From Adineta vaga (lineage: Eukaryota; Animalia; Rotifera), in assembly GCA_021613535.1 (NCBI GenBank), contig CP075493.1, positions 7,874,001 through 7,938,000 of the forward strand: a DNA stretch of 64,000 nt, in the 5' to 3' direction. A program made the position numbers and the translations under genes. Positions 58,165 through 64,000 of this stretch are shown here, in pieces (position 1 is the first letter of the stretch; every line of letters begins with the position of its first letter). The notes under the pieces were generated by a model that was given only the letters and a program-made list of their open reading frames with translations, ran no database searches and was not told the origin of the DNA.

Positions 58165-58868
58165 GCTTAATCTGACTATGTCATACTAAATAAACAATCA
58201 TTTACACGATATTTTTATTATTTATTTCCATCTTATTTGTGTGAAAACATTAACATATTTTATCCCTTTTTCAACAAATAAAGGATCTTACAAGCTTATT
58301 ATTGTGATAGTTTTCTTTATTTATTAAGAAACATAGTCCAGATATTTCACTATGATCTGATCGAATGTCGACAGACAATTATGCCAAGTATATGTTACTA
58401 GAGATGAATGATTCATCGTTCATGGTAGTCGATAAAATCGATACTTGAAAATATCAGACAATAAAATACGGGAGTCTATAGTCTATGTTTGTTTTAAATA
58501 CCTATCATCTATGCAAATAAAACAGAATGTCTTGTTATATTGGCATAATTAAAACTAATATTCTATTTTCGTCACTAATCATATAAACTGAATAGCTTGG
58601 TATATTTTTTGTTGACAATTGAGAAGGACACGTGTACAATAATAAATAAATCTTGTGAGATCATTCAGAATATCTTTTTGAAGAGTTGCATATTGAAATT
58701 ATGACAGACTTTAGGAACATCGTCAATAAAATTCATATTATTACAAAGATTTATTGGTAAATTAGTTATCGTCAACATTTATGTCTAAGAAAAAAATACA
58801 TCTATATATACACACACAACGTTAGTCTACTACGATAAACAAATAAACAACACGCATCTATGATTAAT

Positions 58869-59669
58869 TCAATTCGCTTTTATTTCAGTGGAAAATCTTT
58901 TCGTCGGTATATGTTGATGATGAACATTAGTTTGAGTCAGAGAATCAATTGAATCATGTCGAAATTCATCGATAAGTTCATAGAATGAATTAACAAACCA
59001 TGGGGCACTATCACGTACTTTTTCTCGAGTAATATTTCCGCCAAAACCAATGAAACCATCAGCATTTGCTTCCATATCAGTTGCACCATCACCAATCATA
59101 ATTAAACGTTTATAATTATACTTCTTCTTCAAATATTCTACAACAAGTCCTTTACCACCAGAATCCGATGTCATTTCATTTTCATCAAAGCCAGCATATG
59201 ATCCATCTGGATTAAATAATAAACGATTAGCAAAGACATTTGCTACTGGAATATTCAATTGTTCAGCAACAGGATCAACAATCGAATGAAAACCACCTGT
59301 AATTAAATAGACAGGAATTTGACGTTCATGTAATACACTGATTAATTTACTAATTCCATCAGTTAATTCGGATGGATGATGAATCAGAAATTGTTGTAGA
59401 GATTGAAGTGTTGGTTTAATAAGATTGAGACGTGCTTGTAATGCTGTACGAAAACTCATATTTCCACCCATAGCATTACGTGTAATAGCTTCAACTAATG
59501 AGCCGACTTGTTGAAATTTAGCTAATTCATCAATAGCTTCGTCAGTACAAACAGTCGAATCAACATCAAAACAAACACAATCAGCATTTAACCATAATTT
59601 ACGTATTAATTCATTTGTATCTGCTGATTCGACAGCAGAAGTCTGCTCTGTTAAGCTACGTTGTGTCAT
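58869..59669 (-). CDS. PSPH: Phosphoserine phosphatase (HAD); intronless CDS
   Basis: VCFDVDSTV, EAIDELA, LITGGF, FANRLLF, MIGDGATDMEA, FIGFGGN. Confidence 0.95.
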   Translation of the reverse strand: MTQRSLTEQTSAVESADTNELIRKLWLNADCVCFDVDSTVCTDEAIDELAKFQQVGSLVEAITRNAMGGNMSFRTALQARLNLIKPTLQSLQQFLIHHPSELTDGISKLISVLHERQIPVYLITGGFHSIVDPVAEQLNIPVANVFANRLLFNPDGSYAGFDENEMTSDSGGKGLVVEYLKKKYNYKRLIMIGDGATDMEANADGFIGFGGNITREKVRDSAPWFVNSFYELIDEFRHDSIDSLTQTNVHHQHIPTKRFSTEIKAN

Positions 59670-60199
59670 TCGTATTGAATACTACGTTATTTTACAAAAA
59701 GAAAAACAACGCTGAAGAAAATGATCAGTATCTATGTAAATAAAATAAGTAGTCTTCTTGCAATTGTCAACAAACAGAACGGACGAGAATGAGAAGCAAG
59801 AGAGAGAGAGAGAAAAAGAAAAGAATGGTACGGTTATTTTTGCACCAATCATTTTCCAATAATCATATGACTATTACCATGTGGTAGCACATTGGATCAT
59901 ATTTAACAGAAAAAAAGAAAACAATTTATGACCTTCATTTCGCGGTCATATCATTTCGGATGATGTAACGATAGAATATTTTAATGAATTGTTTCGATGT
60001 TTGACAATTCTAGTATTTACTAACACATTGAAAACGTGAAACTCATTTTAATTCGACAATTCTTTAAGAAAAAATGACTGTATCATCAAATGTTTAGTAT
60101 ATATTGTTGTTTATTCTTTATGTAAAGAAAAGTCAGATTCATTTTCATGTGTTAATTATTATTTCGTTCATCTATCTATGATTTATTTCAAATAACAAT

Positions 60200-61051
60200 T
60201 CAGTCTGTTTGTTGATACGGCATGAATCCAATACATGATGAACTTGAACAGTGGCATGGTTTTGAAAATTTGTCATCAACTATCGTTCCATAACTGTAGG
60301 ATAATTCTTCATGTTCTTGAATTTCTCTTAGAGTAAAAAATGCTAAACGTGGTGGTGTTGGTTGATCGATTCGAATTGGTACGATATGTAAATTTGGATT
60401 ACAACTATGATTTATAAATCGTGTCCAATTACCATAATAACGTGCATCAATAAATGTTTTAATAATTGATTGAGAATGATGTTCATTGTAGAGTAATAAA
60501 TAATTATGTTCAAATGTTTTTGTTTGTGCAATTCGACGATGTGCTTCTTCTTCTGAAAGAACTTCACCAACATATTCACCAATATATGTTCCTGATCGCT
60601 GAATAGGCTTGTTAATAATAACACCATTACCTTTGTTTGATGTAGATATAATTTGAACATTTTTTGATTGATCTTCTTGTTGACTAACACGATTCTGGCA
60701 TGTTTCTAATAGACAATCACATTCAGAATTACACTCCAATACAGGACCTAATTTATTGGAATTTAAACAACAATTGGAATCATAATTGAGACCAAAACGA
60801 GTTGCACATGAACAATTCGTACATGTATCTTCCGATGAACATAAACATCCTTCATATTGTTCATCTTCTTCATTAGTCGTTTGAATTAAACAAGAATCGA
60901 TATACTATGTAGAAATTAATATTAGTTTGTTTCATTTTATTTTTGAAAAAAGTTTAACAGAAAAAGAAAAACCATTTCCTACCACAAATGGTGTTTTTTC
61001 ATTTAAAGCTGCTGCTGTTGTTATGGTTTGTTGTTCAATTGTAGTTGTCAT
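60200..61051 (-). CDS. Pre-SET/SET/post-SET lysine methyltransferase, SETMAR-like (no transposase), about 257 aa
   Basis: Exon 61051-60983, intron 60905-60982, exon 60904-60200. Motifs PFV|YID, GCLC, ECNSECDC, EYVGEV, RFINHSCNPN, EELSYSYG, CHCSSSSC. Confidence 0.88.
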
Positions 61052-61389
61052 GATGATAATGGTAGAGTAAATGAAATAGCGGTTAGATCATTCGTTCGAA
61101 TCAATGCCGTTGGCATAGAACCAATTGGTGTTTGTAAATCTTGTACTAAGATTTGAGAAAAATTTGAATCTATACTAAGACAATGAGTAGCTTTTAATGA
61201 TGATTCACGATGAAAATCAAGTTCAATTGGTGAAATAGTTTTATTTTTCTGAAGATATTCAAGAACATTTAAAAAATGTGAACGTAATTCAGCACGTTTT
61301 TCTTGTTTAGACGACGAATTTTCTGGAGCTTGAGTAGCTAATGCATGACGATATGCTGCAAGACCGTCATCATTATCAATATTTGACAT
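61048..61389 (-). CDS. GEMIN7: Gem-associated protein 7 (Sm-like fold, SMN complex)
   Basis: QEKRAELRSHFL...VQDLQTPIGSMPTALIRTNDL matches my recollection of the Gemin7 signature (EQ.ARA.LR..L; LQTPIG....ALLR.SD). Confidence 0.8.
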   Translation of the reverse strand: MSNIDNDDGLAAYRHALATQAPENSSSKQEKRAELRSHFLNVLEYLQKNKTISPIELDFHRESSLKATHCLSIDSNFSQILVQDLQTPIGSMPTALIRTNDLTAISFTLPLSS

Positions 61390-61480
61390 CTGAAATAAAG
61401 GAATATCTGTAACTTAATGAGTAAGCATACGTTTTTATTAGATTGAAAGTACAAGACTGAAAAGAATAGCTTCTGTTTAT

Positions 61481-62200
61481 TTAATACGGATGCATCGATG
61501 GTGGTTGATATCCTCCCGTATTTATACGTGAACAGGCATTCATATATTCATTAAAATCTAGAACTCCTGTTTGATTAGTATCGAAACGACGAAACGTTGC
61601 TTCAGATTCACGTTCAATATCCTGCCATGCCATGTTAAGTAATGAAGAAATAAAAAGTCTTCGAAAACCTTCACGATCAATTACACCATTTGGATTCGCA
61701 TAGTTATTAAATTCATATCGAAATCGTTCGACTTCTGGAATGGAAATTCCACTTTGATTAGAAATGGAAATATTGTTTTCATATACAGATGGATGCTGAT
61801 TATTTGAGAACAATGGTGCTGCTTGCGTTGGCTGCTGATTATTTGAGAACAATGGTGCTGCTTGCGTTGGCTGCTGTTGTGCATATTGTGGCGATGGTTG
61901 TTGCATATACTGCGGTTGTTGCATATACTGCGGTTGCTGCATATACTGTGGTTGTTGCTGCTGCATATATTGTGGTTGTTGCTGCATATATTGTGGTTGT
62001 TGCTGCATATACTGTGGTTGTTGCTGCATATACTGTGGTTGTTGCTGCATATATTGAGCTGGTTGTTGTACATATTGTGGTTGCTGTGCGTACTGAGGTT
62101 GTTGTTGAGCAATAGGTCGTTGCTGAGCAGCTGGAGCTCCTGTGCCTGGTTTTGGAGTTTTTGCGAACACTCCTTTTATTCTTTGAAAAAAAGTACTCAT
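61481..62200 (-). CDS. Gln/Pro/Tyr/Met-repeat low-complexity protein with C-terminal EF-hand pair
   Basis: (QPQYMQQ)n repeats; EF loops YANPNGVIDREGF (degenerate) and FDTNQTGVLDFNEY (canonical); intronless. Confidence 0.8.
   Translation of the reverse strand: MSTFFQRIKGVFAKTPKPGTGAPAAQQRPIAQQQPQYAQQPQYVQQPAQYMQQQPQYMQQQPQYMQQQPQYMQQQPQYMQQQQPQYMQQPQYMQQPQYMQQPSPQYAQQQPTQAAPLFSNNQQPTQAAPLFSNNQHPSVYENNISISNQSGISIPEVERFRYEFNNYANPNGVIDREGFRRLFISSLLNMAWQDIERESEATFRRFDTNQTGVLDFNEYMNACSRINTGGYQPPSMHPY
61796..62106 (-). repeat. Coding tandem repeats: 18-24-nt QPQYMQ(Q) units and a 39-nt duplication (QQPTQAAPLFSNN x2)
   Basis: Direct reading of the sequence. Confidence 0.9.
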
Positions 62201-63487
62201 AATTAGTGCGTATTAGGAAATATGTTTACGCTGTGAACCCCGATATCACCACGTGATTAACAATTGTTAGTGATAGTGTTTTTTTCATCTTACGTTGAGA
62301 TATATCATCCGTAACAGAGGATAAAAATGACTGTTCTGTTACAAGGTAAAACCTACTCACATGAAACTATTTTATGTTAGCGGTTTGCTACATATGCTCT
62401 AATCATTAACGATTAATTTCAATAAATTACTGAACAGAAAATAGCACGTAAAAAAATTCTGCACAGAGACAGAGCGCATGAATAATCCAACAATAAATGG
62501 TCATGCTGCTTAACAAATAGTAAAATTTTATTTATGAAACAAATCAGTGGTGTCATCTATTGACGAGTTAAATTCTTTTCGCAAACTTTATTAGTTCATT
62601 ATGAATAAAATTTAATAGTAGATATGCTCAAAGTTTGCAATGTATACTAATTAACTCGTTGCTACTTTTACGTTGACGTTTGATTTTCAGATTTGAATCC
62701 AAATTACTCTTTATCATAGTTTTGCATTTTTTAAGAATGGAACCATGTATTCAAATATAACTGAGAAAGTATAATGTATCCTAGTTTTATTAAAAACAAC
62801 TATCTGTCATCTCATAAGATCGCAACTAATATGTAGATCGAAATACATAGTATTTACTTTCTTTCGGATACTATCGTGTATCTTATTGTTTGACGGTTCA
62901 GTTGTATACGTACGAATAATTATGAGAAAATTGGAACAAATATAAAAATAAAACAAATAAGATTCAAAAAGTAAGTCATCGATAACAACTTATACAATGC
63001 TAATAAATACGATCAAAAGACATGTTTTAAGATACTAACTTTCTCTGTATACATGTATATAACTGGAAGAATTACTTTTGATTTTTGAATTTTCTCGGAA
63101 GATTTCTATATTAAATCGTTGATTTCTACAATAATCAATTGACAAAATATCTCTCAGTCAAAGTATGTTTTTGTATTCATTCGTAAGTTTCCGAGACTTC
63201 TATTGTATTTTCTATGATTTGGATCGATAGATGTCATGAGTGAGAAGTGCTTATTCTATTGATAGGTTAAATAAGAGAACGTTTTCATCCAAACAACATA
63301 AGATATTACTGTTCGCGTACTGTATGGACTTATCGATTGACATCATAGTTCATATAGATCAATTAGGCTAGTAGAATTTTAGATCCTATGAATCGATTAG
63401 AACTATCTAATTAATTATTTGGATAATATTGAGAAATATATTTGTTGAATTAATCCAAATTTGATATTTTATAATTTTAGAAGAAAT

Positions 63488-64000
63488 ATGAGTGATAGTG
63501 AAACAGAAACGCAATTACGGAAAGATTTTGTAGAATCATCATCATTTGATTCATTACCATTGAAAAAATGGTTGAAAGATCAATGTCGTCTACTTGGATT
63601 TGATAATCCAACTCCTGTTCAACATTCATGTATTCCACGTATTCTTGAAGGTATATTTAATTCTTTCTTTTATCGAAAATGTTTATTTTATTCTTATTCT
63701 TATTTGTAGGTCAAGATATTTTAGCATGTGCAAAAACTGGATCGGGTAAAACAGCAGCATTTGCTTTACCTATTCTCGATGTACTTAGTGATGATATCTA
63801 TGGTATTTTTGCACTGGTTCTTACACCGACACGGTATATTTTAGTGTAAAAGTAAAAATACATGTTGTTTTAATCTTTAACTAGAGAACTAGCATATCAA
63901 ATTGCTGATCAATTTCGAGTCTTTGGTAAACCATTAGGTTTAAAAGACTGTGTCATTACCGGTGGAATGGGTAAGTGAATATTCATTCTATTAATTTACT
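63488..64000 (+). CDS. DDX49: DEAD-box RNA helicase DDX49/Dbp8, 5' part (runs off the window)
   Basis: Q motif [40 protein letters not shown]|[28 protein letters not shown]. Confidence 0.9.

Follow-up and report, generated by a model that had tools for sequence, protein, structure and literature searches.

Three genes stand head to tail on the minus strand of a 64,000-nucleotide (nt) stretch of the genome of the bdelloid rotifer Adineta vaga (assembly GCA_021613535.1, contig CP075493.1, positions 7,874,001 to 7,938,000; this whole stretch is the window referred to below), and their crowding raises the question of how many transcripts serve them and how the last of the three is translated. The window sequence and its open reading frames (ORFs) identify them, in the order of transcription, as genes for an EF-hand protein, for Gemin7 and for a SETMAR-like SET-domain protein, called SET in the following. 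A sequence-only reading had pictured a polycistronic precursor, resolved ahead of Gemin7 by 3' cleavage and spliced-leader trans-splicing, with the last two cistrons left together and translationally coupled. The layout from which it started, namely three co-oriented genes, a 91-nt gap with two AATAAA signals, a possible splice donor GTATGC at 61430, TTTCAG directly before the Gemin7 ATG, and 530 nt to a following gene of the phosphoserine phosphatase (PSPH) type, agrees with the sequence and the ORFs in all its coordinates. Two of its predictions are borne out by RNA: the leader is joined at this TTTCAG, and Gemin7 and SET stay together on a single mature mRNA, where the stop codon of the one overlaps the start codon of the other, an arrangement that is conserved in other bdelloids.

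The RNA evidence comes from the contigs of four public runs (X1, X3, X16 and X14), which were placed on positions 58700-63700 of the window (5001 nt). Three of the runs behave as RNA, as all of them contain the joint that removes a 78-nt intron of SET (60904 to 60983), whereas X14, which covers the whole region and lacks the joint, behaves as DNA. Since 2005 rotifers have been known to use spliced-leader trans-splicing. Their leader has been published as GGCTTATTACAACTTACCAAGAG (PMC3795323, Table 1), with ...CTTACCAAGAG as its 3' end (PMC3795323). An 802-nt contig of X16 (contig 21) carries nine non-genomic letters behind position 61391, CTTGGTAAG on the plus strand and hence CTTACCAAG on the RNA strand; joined to the genomic AG at 61391-61390 they read CTTACCAAGAG followed immediately by the ATG, which is exactly the last 11 bases of the leader. 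The chance that nine unaligned bases would match the leader is about 4e-6, and the chimeric 24-mer that links leader and Gemin7 is absent from the genome with two mismatches allowed. Contig 28 of X3 stops exactly at 61391, and contig 5 of X1 extends from Gemin7 to 61399, which indicates an un-trans-spliced precursor. A contig of another bdelloid species from the Logan collection (L029) has CAAGAG as its first bases, directly before the ATG of Gemin7.

The spacer ahead of Gemin7 has a branch-point-like TTACAGAT at 61412-61405, then a pyrimidine tract and then the AG. In related spacers a TTAAYAGAT motif recurs 19-35 nt upstream of the acceptor AG, the position of a branch point, and a pyrimidine tract with an AG directly before the Gemin7 ATG is present in all 22 related contigs that reach the Gemin7 start. 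There is very little doubt that the rotifer spliced leader of 22-23 nt is added to the pre-mRNA of Gemin7 at the AG of positions 61391-61390; with the leader joined at an AG that abuts the Gemin7 ATG, it constitutes the entire 5' untranslated region (UTR). Three points weigh on the other side: in A. vaga the leader is seen in one contig from one of the three RNA-like runs; in L029 just four bases beyond the AG are informative for the leader; and the RNA evidence as a whole consists of assembled contigs and not of reads, and contigs do not reveal starts, ends, strand or abundance.

A search for the leader pattern across the whole A. vaga assembly (100.8 Mb, six contigs) found (T)GCTTATTACAACTTACCAAGAG with a GT donor behind it 58 times, versus none in a reversed control, and many of these sit in divergent pairs, as expected for leader-RNA genes. 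The members of such pairs are often about 156 nt apart, as in L001/L002 (C1:2551158-2551338), and clusters are present on C5 and C2. Single-base variants of the leader also exist, for example with TTAAAAC instead of TTACAAC; the 11 leader bases seen at Gemin7 match the common leader and are too few to distinguish these variants.

Downstream of the leader the same molecules show what becomes of the junction between Gemin7 and SET. Contig 21 of X16 begins with the leader tail, includes the complete Gemin7 ORF, the shared ATGA and SET exon 1, and crosses the spliced junction into 384 nt of exon 2. L029, which was located via its full-length SET product of 253 amino acids (aa), is a 1132-nt contig with the leader tail, the Gemin7 ORF (7-351), ATGA, an intron-less SET ORF (348-1109) and an AATAAA signal. 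As L029 spans from the leader to the poly(A) signal, and contig 21 of X16 has the same order, the mature mRNA is, with high confidence, bicistronic: the Gemin7 ORF is followed by that of the SETMAR-like protein, and the AUG of the second shares bases with the UGA of the first (AUGA). This mRNA ends about 40-60 nt past the SET stop; the SET-side RNA contigs end at 60160 in X1 and 60138 in X3, beyond the AATAAA signal. Between 59869 and 60035 none of the three RNA runs has any depth, and a contig with the 5' UTR of the downstream PSPH-like HAD gene extends to 59780. That gene looks independent of the SET unit, as the sequence-only reading had allowed.

In X1 and X3 the spliced form of SET is accompanied by an intron-retaining contig (60876-61012); with the intron kept, the SET frame would stop after 39 codons, and the intron also holds an AATAAA of its own. 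Logan contigs L022-L025 were considered as transcripts and rejected, since all of them keep the SET intron and are hence DNA.

The proximity of the Gemin7 stop and the SET start is conserved across bdelloids. We found 37 relatives of Gemin7 and collected 23 related contigs (metagenome, genome and Logan), some of them near-duplicates, in which Gemin7 is 58-89% identical to that of the window; of these, L038 lacks the Gemin7 start, L040 breaks off ahead of the Gemin7 stop, and L021, from Didymodactylos carnosus, is without an intact SET frame. The SET start lies between -11 and +4 nt from the Gemin7 stop in 21 of the 21 contigs with SET exon 1 behind Gemin7. Five layouts account for this: ATGA, in the window and eight contigs (and also in L021, ahead of the broken frame); TAATG, in 11 contigs; and, in one contig each, TAGATG, TAAnATG and ATG-n8-TGA, the last with its ATG 11 nt before the TGA. 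Across lineages the relative frame of the two ORFs takes all three possible values (0, +1 and -1). The flanking gaps vary far more than the junction, from 58 to 1050 nt upstream and from 429 to 1080 nt downstream. Constant proximity combined with a varying frame excludes frameshifting or read-through as a common mechanism, and points to selection acting on the stop/start proximity as such. Because both the acceptor directly before the ATG and the stop/start layout recur in related bdelloid contigs, neither is a product of chance. The protein tree is poorly resolved; it suggests that ATGA is widespread and that the other junction forms arose several times.

The first exon of SET, which begins at this junction, is itself retained: its peptide is 62-83% conserved in other lineages, and it is kept as protein (IEEQT...PFV) out to the D. 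carnosus protein P0056 and the more distant P0057. The D. carnosus locus L021 (3725-4120) keeps both the acceptor directly before the ATG and the ATGA, followed by a SET exon-1-like stretch that is broken (ATG AAA TAG); the intact SET of this species (P0056) is on another contig.

How, then, is SET made from the second position of this mRNA? The layout suggests that ribosomes finishing Gemin7 probably start again at the AUG that overlaps its stop. In caliciviruses, influenza B, the hypovirus CHV1 and SART1, UAAUG and AUGA are the classic hallmarks of termination-reinitiation (PMC10275272, PMC2699510). Leaky scanning is unlikely, because every Gemin7 ORF holds two to nine internal ATGs. What speaks against reinitiation is that there is no sign of an element promoting it at the junction. 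No UGGGA/TGGGA motif was found within 120 nt upstream of the Gemin7 stop in 18 lineages; a conserved RNA structure near the junction was not found (the consensus fold has -1.4 kcal/mol and one covarying pair); and synonymous sites near the junction show no excess of constraint. With neither the motif nor a structure, reinitiation at SET, if real, would not be of the type that depends on a TURBS, a termination upstream ribosome-binding site.

The strongest competitor to reinitiation is that SET is made from an mRNA of its own, arising from an internal leader acceptor or a start site inside the Gemin7 ORF, for example at ...TCAAATCTTAG before TACAAG near 61150, so that the overlap would be of little weight or act only after a short residual upstream ORF. 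An acceptor-like TTTTCTCAAATCTTAG is indeed present inside the Gemin7 ORF, codon 80 of Gemin7 favors ATC where other isoleucine codons favor ATT, and a minor transcript with SET alone could have been lost during assembly, as rare isoforms are. Yet the contigs of three runs are unbranched across the whole Gemin7 ORF (60983 to 61391 or 61399), with no internal joint or loose end among those listed, and L029 is colinear, as a single molecule, all the way from leader to AATAAA. Moreover, a SET-only mRNA from an internal acceptor would start with the in-frame AUG of codon 92 and end at the same stop, and would thus still need reinitiation, and the strict stop/start juxtaposition in 21 related contigs would be left without explanation. 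We consider such a separate SET mRNA unlikely.

A Gemin7-SET fusion protein, produced via a short intron, stop-codon read-through or a frameshift, is very improbable. Its support comes from public models of 350-355 aa (P0039, P0041 and P0042, from Adineta steineri, Rotaria sp. Silwood1 and Silwood2), which join Gemin7 at about residue 96 to SET exon 1, skipping the Gemin7 C-terminus, its stop and the SET start, and from L020, where the two ORFs are in frame with only a TAG between them. Against it, no splice fusing the two ORFs was found in any run, the RNA contigs of two species pass colinearly over the junction with the 78-nt SET intron as the sole splice, no single recoding mechanism fits the differing relative frames, and the public models of A. 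vaga (257 aa) and A. ricciae (258 aa) contain SET alone. As the RNA contigs of two species are without such a splice, the fusion models are probably gene-finder artifacts with an invented intron.

Reinitiation at the overlapping codons being the favored account of SET, the next question is whether the EF-hand gene belongs to the same transcription unit. We lean slightly toward an operon in which it shares its promoter with Gemin7-SET. All three genes would be transcribed from one promoter upstream of about 62430; the EF-hand mRNA would be freed by cleavage and polyadenylation at the AATAAA signals of the spacer, and the downstream RNA would be capped by the leader. Such a unit would give two mRNAs and three proteins, one of its junctions being trans-spliced and the other translationally coupled. 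The two AATAAA signals (61481-61476, which overlaps the EF-hand stop and is conserved, and 61439-61434), the branch-point-like motif, the pyrimidine tract and the AG together fill the spacer, and no further conserved block was seen in related spacers. Orthologs of the EF-hand gene lie upstream of Gemin7 in most bdelloid loci, and the spacer between them is 58-143 nt long in 14 of the 17 loci with the gene. EF-hand contigs end at 61476, 61433 and 61396 in the three runs, contig ends that do not reveal poly(A) sites; the one reaching farthest, contig 29 of X3, is unbroken from the EF-hand coding sequence to 61396, past both poly(A) signals and 5 nt short of the acceptor. From the Gemin7 side, contig 5 of X1 extends to 61399, and the three runs combined leave only 61397-61398 of the spacer without RNA. 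With 61412-61405 necessarily within the outron, a start site of Gemin7's own would have to be inside the EF-hand 3' end region.

At the other end of the presumptive unit, contig 7 of X1 covers 61999-62427 and contig 30 of X3 extends to 62390, with no leader letters among those listed at the 5' contig end of the EF-hand gene. Farther upstream RNA depth is zero in bins 62541-62874 and 63042-63375 (X1, X3 and X16), the exception in this intergenic stretch being one low-depth chimeric contig that touches about 62976 in X1 and X16. The only conserved non-coding block of the locus lies here, upstream of the EF-hand gene at 62514-62584, about 90-155 nt farther upstream than any RNA contig extends (62427). 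Over 71 nt it shows 76-79% identity in two loci with a decayed EF-hand gene, L017 and L019, and part of it is present in L020 and L026. At L017:3100-3400 and L019:525-834 the EF-hand gene is a pseudogene remnant (L017, with a FHNFDINQSDVLDFIA fragment ending in a stop) or almost wholly deleted (L019), with the acceptor and Gemin7-SET intact.

The element was also considered as a repeated genomic motif, which was rejected, as its bipartite pattern is unique in the genome; one half-site has three matches in the window versus 0.5 expected, a non-significant excess. In three lineages, though not in L020, the element opens a short ATG ORF (MTPLICF.../MTLLICL...).

It is also possible, with a somewhat smaller likelihood, that Gemin7-SET is an independent unit with its own promoter in the EF-hand 3' end or the spacer, where the leader trims a short outron as in monocistronic trans-spliced genes and the tight spacing reflects a compact genome. 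Several observations tell against the operon and in favor of this alternative. No RNA contig bridges the spacer between the EF-hand gene and Gemin7: by depth arithmetic 61392-61395 is uncovered in X3, 61400-61432 in X1 and 61392-61475 in X16. The spacers of L028, L027 and L037 are 269, 609 and 1050 nt long and give room for a separate promoter. In the decayed loci L017 and L019 the final codons of the EF-hand gene are still present together with the spacer, so that an internal promoter located there would have outlasted the decay of the gene. Leader addition in rotifers is, in addition, not confined to operons. The literature that was searched yielded none in rotifers, and a 2021 methods paper gives none as reported for them (PMC7986045). 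On the other hand, EF-hand-side RNA extends to 5 nt from the acceptor, so that the start site of an independent unit would sit inside another gene's transcript, in a spacer already taken up by the poly(A) signals, the branch-point-like motif and the pyrimidine tract.

A start site in the spacer combined with cis-splicing of a 41-nt intron from GTATGC (61430) to the AG at 61390, the scenario that would have contradicted the sequence-only reading, can practically be dismissed: as a donor GTATGC would be reasonable, and strings similar to ACGTAT are seen again in some of the related spacers, but a joint of 61430 to 61390 is found in no run, contig 29 of X3 is colinear through 61430 down to 61396, and the letters joined at 61391 are those of the leader.

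Taken as an operon, the EF-hand-Gemin7-SET locus can be compared with several known systems. Operons resolved by a spliced leader are documented in nematodes, tunicates, flatworms and chaetognaths. The chaetognath operons are described in a 2025 paper that names rotifers only in passing (PMC12460157). Operons of the single-leader, short-gap kind (Ciona, Oikopleura, chaetognaths and the SL1-type of Caenorhabditis elegans) resemble the A. vaga locus in that co-oriented unrelated genes are separated by less than 150 nt, with an upstream poly(A) signal and a downstream acceptor in the gap, and in that the downstream mRNA gets a leader used by other genes as well. They differ from it in that the A. 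vaga locus has one junction left wholly unresolved, and the polycistronic precursor is here only inferred. The SL2-type operons of C. elegans share the succession of a poly(A) signal, about 100 nt and an acceptor. In contrast to these, A. vaga shows no evident second, operon-specific leader, the genome search having found one leader family with point variants, and just 43 nt separate the second AATAAA from the acceptor.

The junction of Gemin7 and SET has its closest parallels in the termination-reinitiation of viruses and retrotransposons (caliciviruses, influenza B M1/BM2, CHV1 and SART1), where likewise two long ORFs per mRNA have their stop and start shared or a few nt apart, with UAAUG and AUGA recurring. 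Unlike these, Gemin7-SET is a cellular animal mRNA for two unrelated housekeeping-type proteins, it has no UGGGA/TURBS-like motif or conserved structure upstream, and its coupling is inferred from sequence. To our knowledge, nearly all other examples of efficient reinitiation following a long ORF come from viruses and retrotransposons. Cellular bicistronic mRNAs, such as green-algal polycistrons, the dicistronic genes of Drosophila and SNURF-SNRPN, also carry two conserved proteins on one capped mRNA. Gemin7-SET differs from them in having a spliced leader as its 5' end and ORFs that overlap instead of being spaced. The green-algal polycistrons are attributed to leaky scanning (PMC11291117), which is unlikely for Gemin7-SET with two to nine AUGs inside the first ORF.

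The locus would thus combine a leader operon with termination-reinitiation coupling, both of known kinds. What it adds is direct leader evidence at a defined acceptor and an RNA-verified, bdelloid-conserved mRNA for two proteins whose stop and start codons share bases. This bicistron is newer than the operon layout, and the Gemin7-SET pair matters more than the operon question. For the latter, the locus offers a small RNA-anchored test case for rotifer operons in a species with a chromosome-level genome; for the former, if translation is indeed coupled, it would be a natural system for eukaryotic reinitiation without a known tethering element. For annotation the consequence is that public models of Adineta steineri and Rotaria merge two ORFs through an invented intron. 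More tentatively, it is possible, though somewhat less likely than not, that bdelloids possess "hybrid" operons, with poly(A) cleavage and leader addition separating the cistrons at some boundaries and others deliberately left for TURBS-independent termination-reinitiation at overlapping codons; Gemin7-SETMAR might then have been an obligate two-protein mRNA since before the bdelloid radiation, and the mechanism may operate at other loci.

Table 1. Features of the EF-hand-Gemin7-SET locus and its surroundings (window positions)
Feature	Position	Strand	Remarks
Conserved non-coding element	62514..62584	minus	Candidate promoter-proximal element, TCAATAGATGACRCYACT ... TTTTACTATTTG
EF-hand gene 5' UTR, as far as RNA contigs extend	62201..62427	minus	X1 and X3 contigs
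Cistron 1, EF-hand/Q-rich ORF	61481..62200	minus	Stop TAA 61483-61481; 239 aa
Spacer between EF-hand gene and Gemin7	61390..61480	minus	91 nt; 3' end tttcAG, then ATG
Spliced-leader trans-splice acceptor AG	61390..61391	minus	Adjoins Gemin7 ATG directly
Cistron 2, Gemin7	61048..61389	minus	113 aa + TGA stop
ATGA, SET start overlapping Gemin7 stop	61048..61051	minus	Sequence context tcATGAca
SET exon 1	60983..61051	minus	23 codons, MTTTIEQQTITTAAALNEKTPFV
SET intron	60905..60982	minus	78 nt, GT..AG; RNA contigs skip 60904 to 60983
SET exon 2	60200..60904	minus	Pre-SET, SET and post-SET domains, SETMAR-like; TGA stop
SET 3' UTR, end of transcription unit	60138..60199	minus	AATAAA 60187-60182
HAD gene, phosphoserine-phosphatase-like	starts 59669	minus	530 nt beyond SET stop

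The identities of the genes (Table 1) rest on profile and structure comparisons. Gemin7 matches the Pfam family PF11095 with E=6.6e-16 and 58.4 bits (cut-off 25) over profile positions 2-76 of 76, and in a PDB comparison the human Gemin7 structures 7BBL and 1Y96 match it at E of about 7e-4; a lookup of the exact window protein in assemblies found none on record. Exon 2 of SET matches PF00856 (Pfam, E=3.9e-22, 79.1 bits), the best PDB match of SET is human SETMAR (3BO5, E=2.5e-39), and a pre-SET domain (PF05033) is annotated on the public SET model; the protein is SETMAR-like without the transposase part. The two SET exons were searched separately and not as the joined 257-aa model: exon 2 is 100% identical to "hypothetical protein I4U23_002531 [Adineta vaga]" (P0038), the public SET model of that length, and exon 1 matches its N-terminus. 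Gemin7 is single-copy in the assembly; the other SET copies there are paralogs, just 30-33% identical, and no ohnologous copy of the locus was found. With Gemin7 single-copy and the SET paralogs distant, a comparison of the locus within the genome is impossible. When the window was scanned for further pairs of ORFs on one strand in which a start lies at -14 to +6 of a stop, only exon/intron artifacts were returned.

The EF-hand protein, whose gene is covered by RNA contigs, has QQPQYMQ repeats and a C-terminal EF-hand pair. Its match to EF-hand_6 (PF13405) is weak, at 25.2 bits barely over the Pfam cut-off of 25, the other EF-hand matches being weak and consistent with it, and among solved structures this end is weakly similar to hippocalcin/NCS proteins (E=7.7e-9). 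The downstream gene has a HAD hydrolase match in Pfam with E=1e-17. On the opposite side, a DEAD-box helicase gene on the plus strand (window 63461-64000) starts divergently about 1.26 kb upstream of the EF-hand ATG and is kept as a neighbor in L017, L019 and L020. The QQPQYMQ repeat region (61914-62033, minus strand) is length-polymorphic: a contig of X3 skips 105 nt (61914 to 62020), and one of X1 has a 3-nt insertion at 62021. In some lineages (L032:677-1228) the EF-hand ortholog starts with MGNSMNK, of the N-myristoylation type as in neuronal calcium sensors, whereas the A. vaga copy starts with MSTFFQ.

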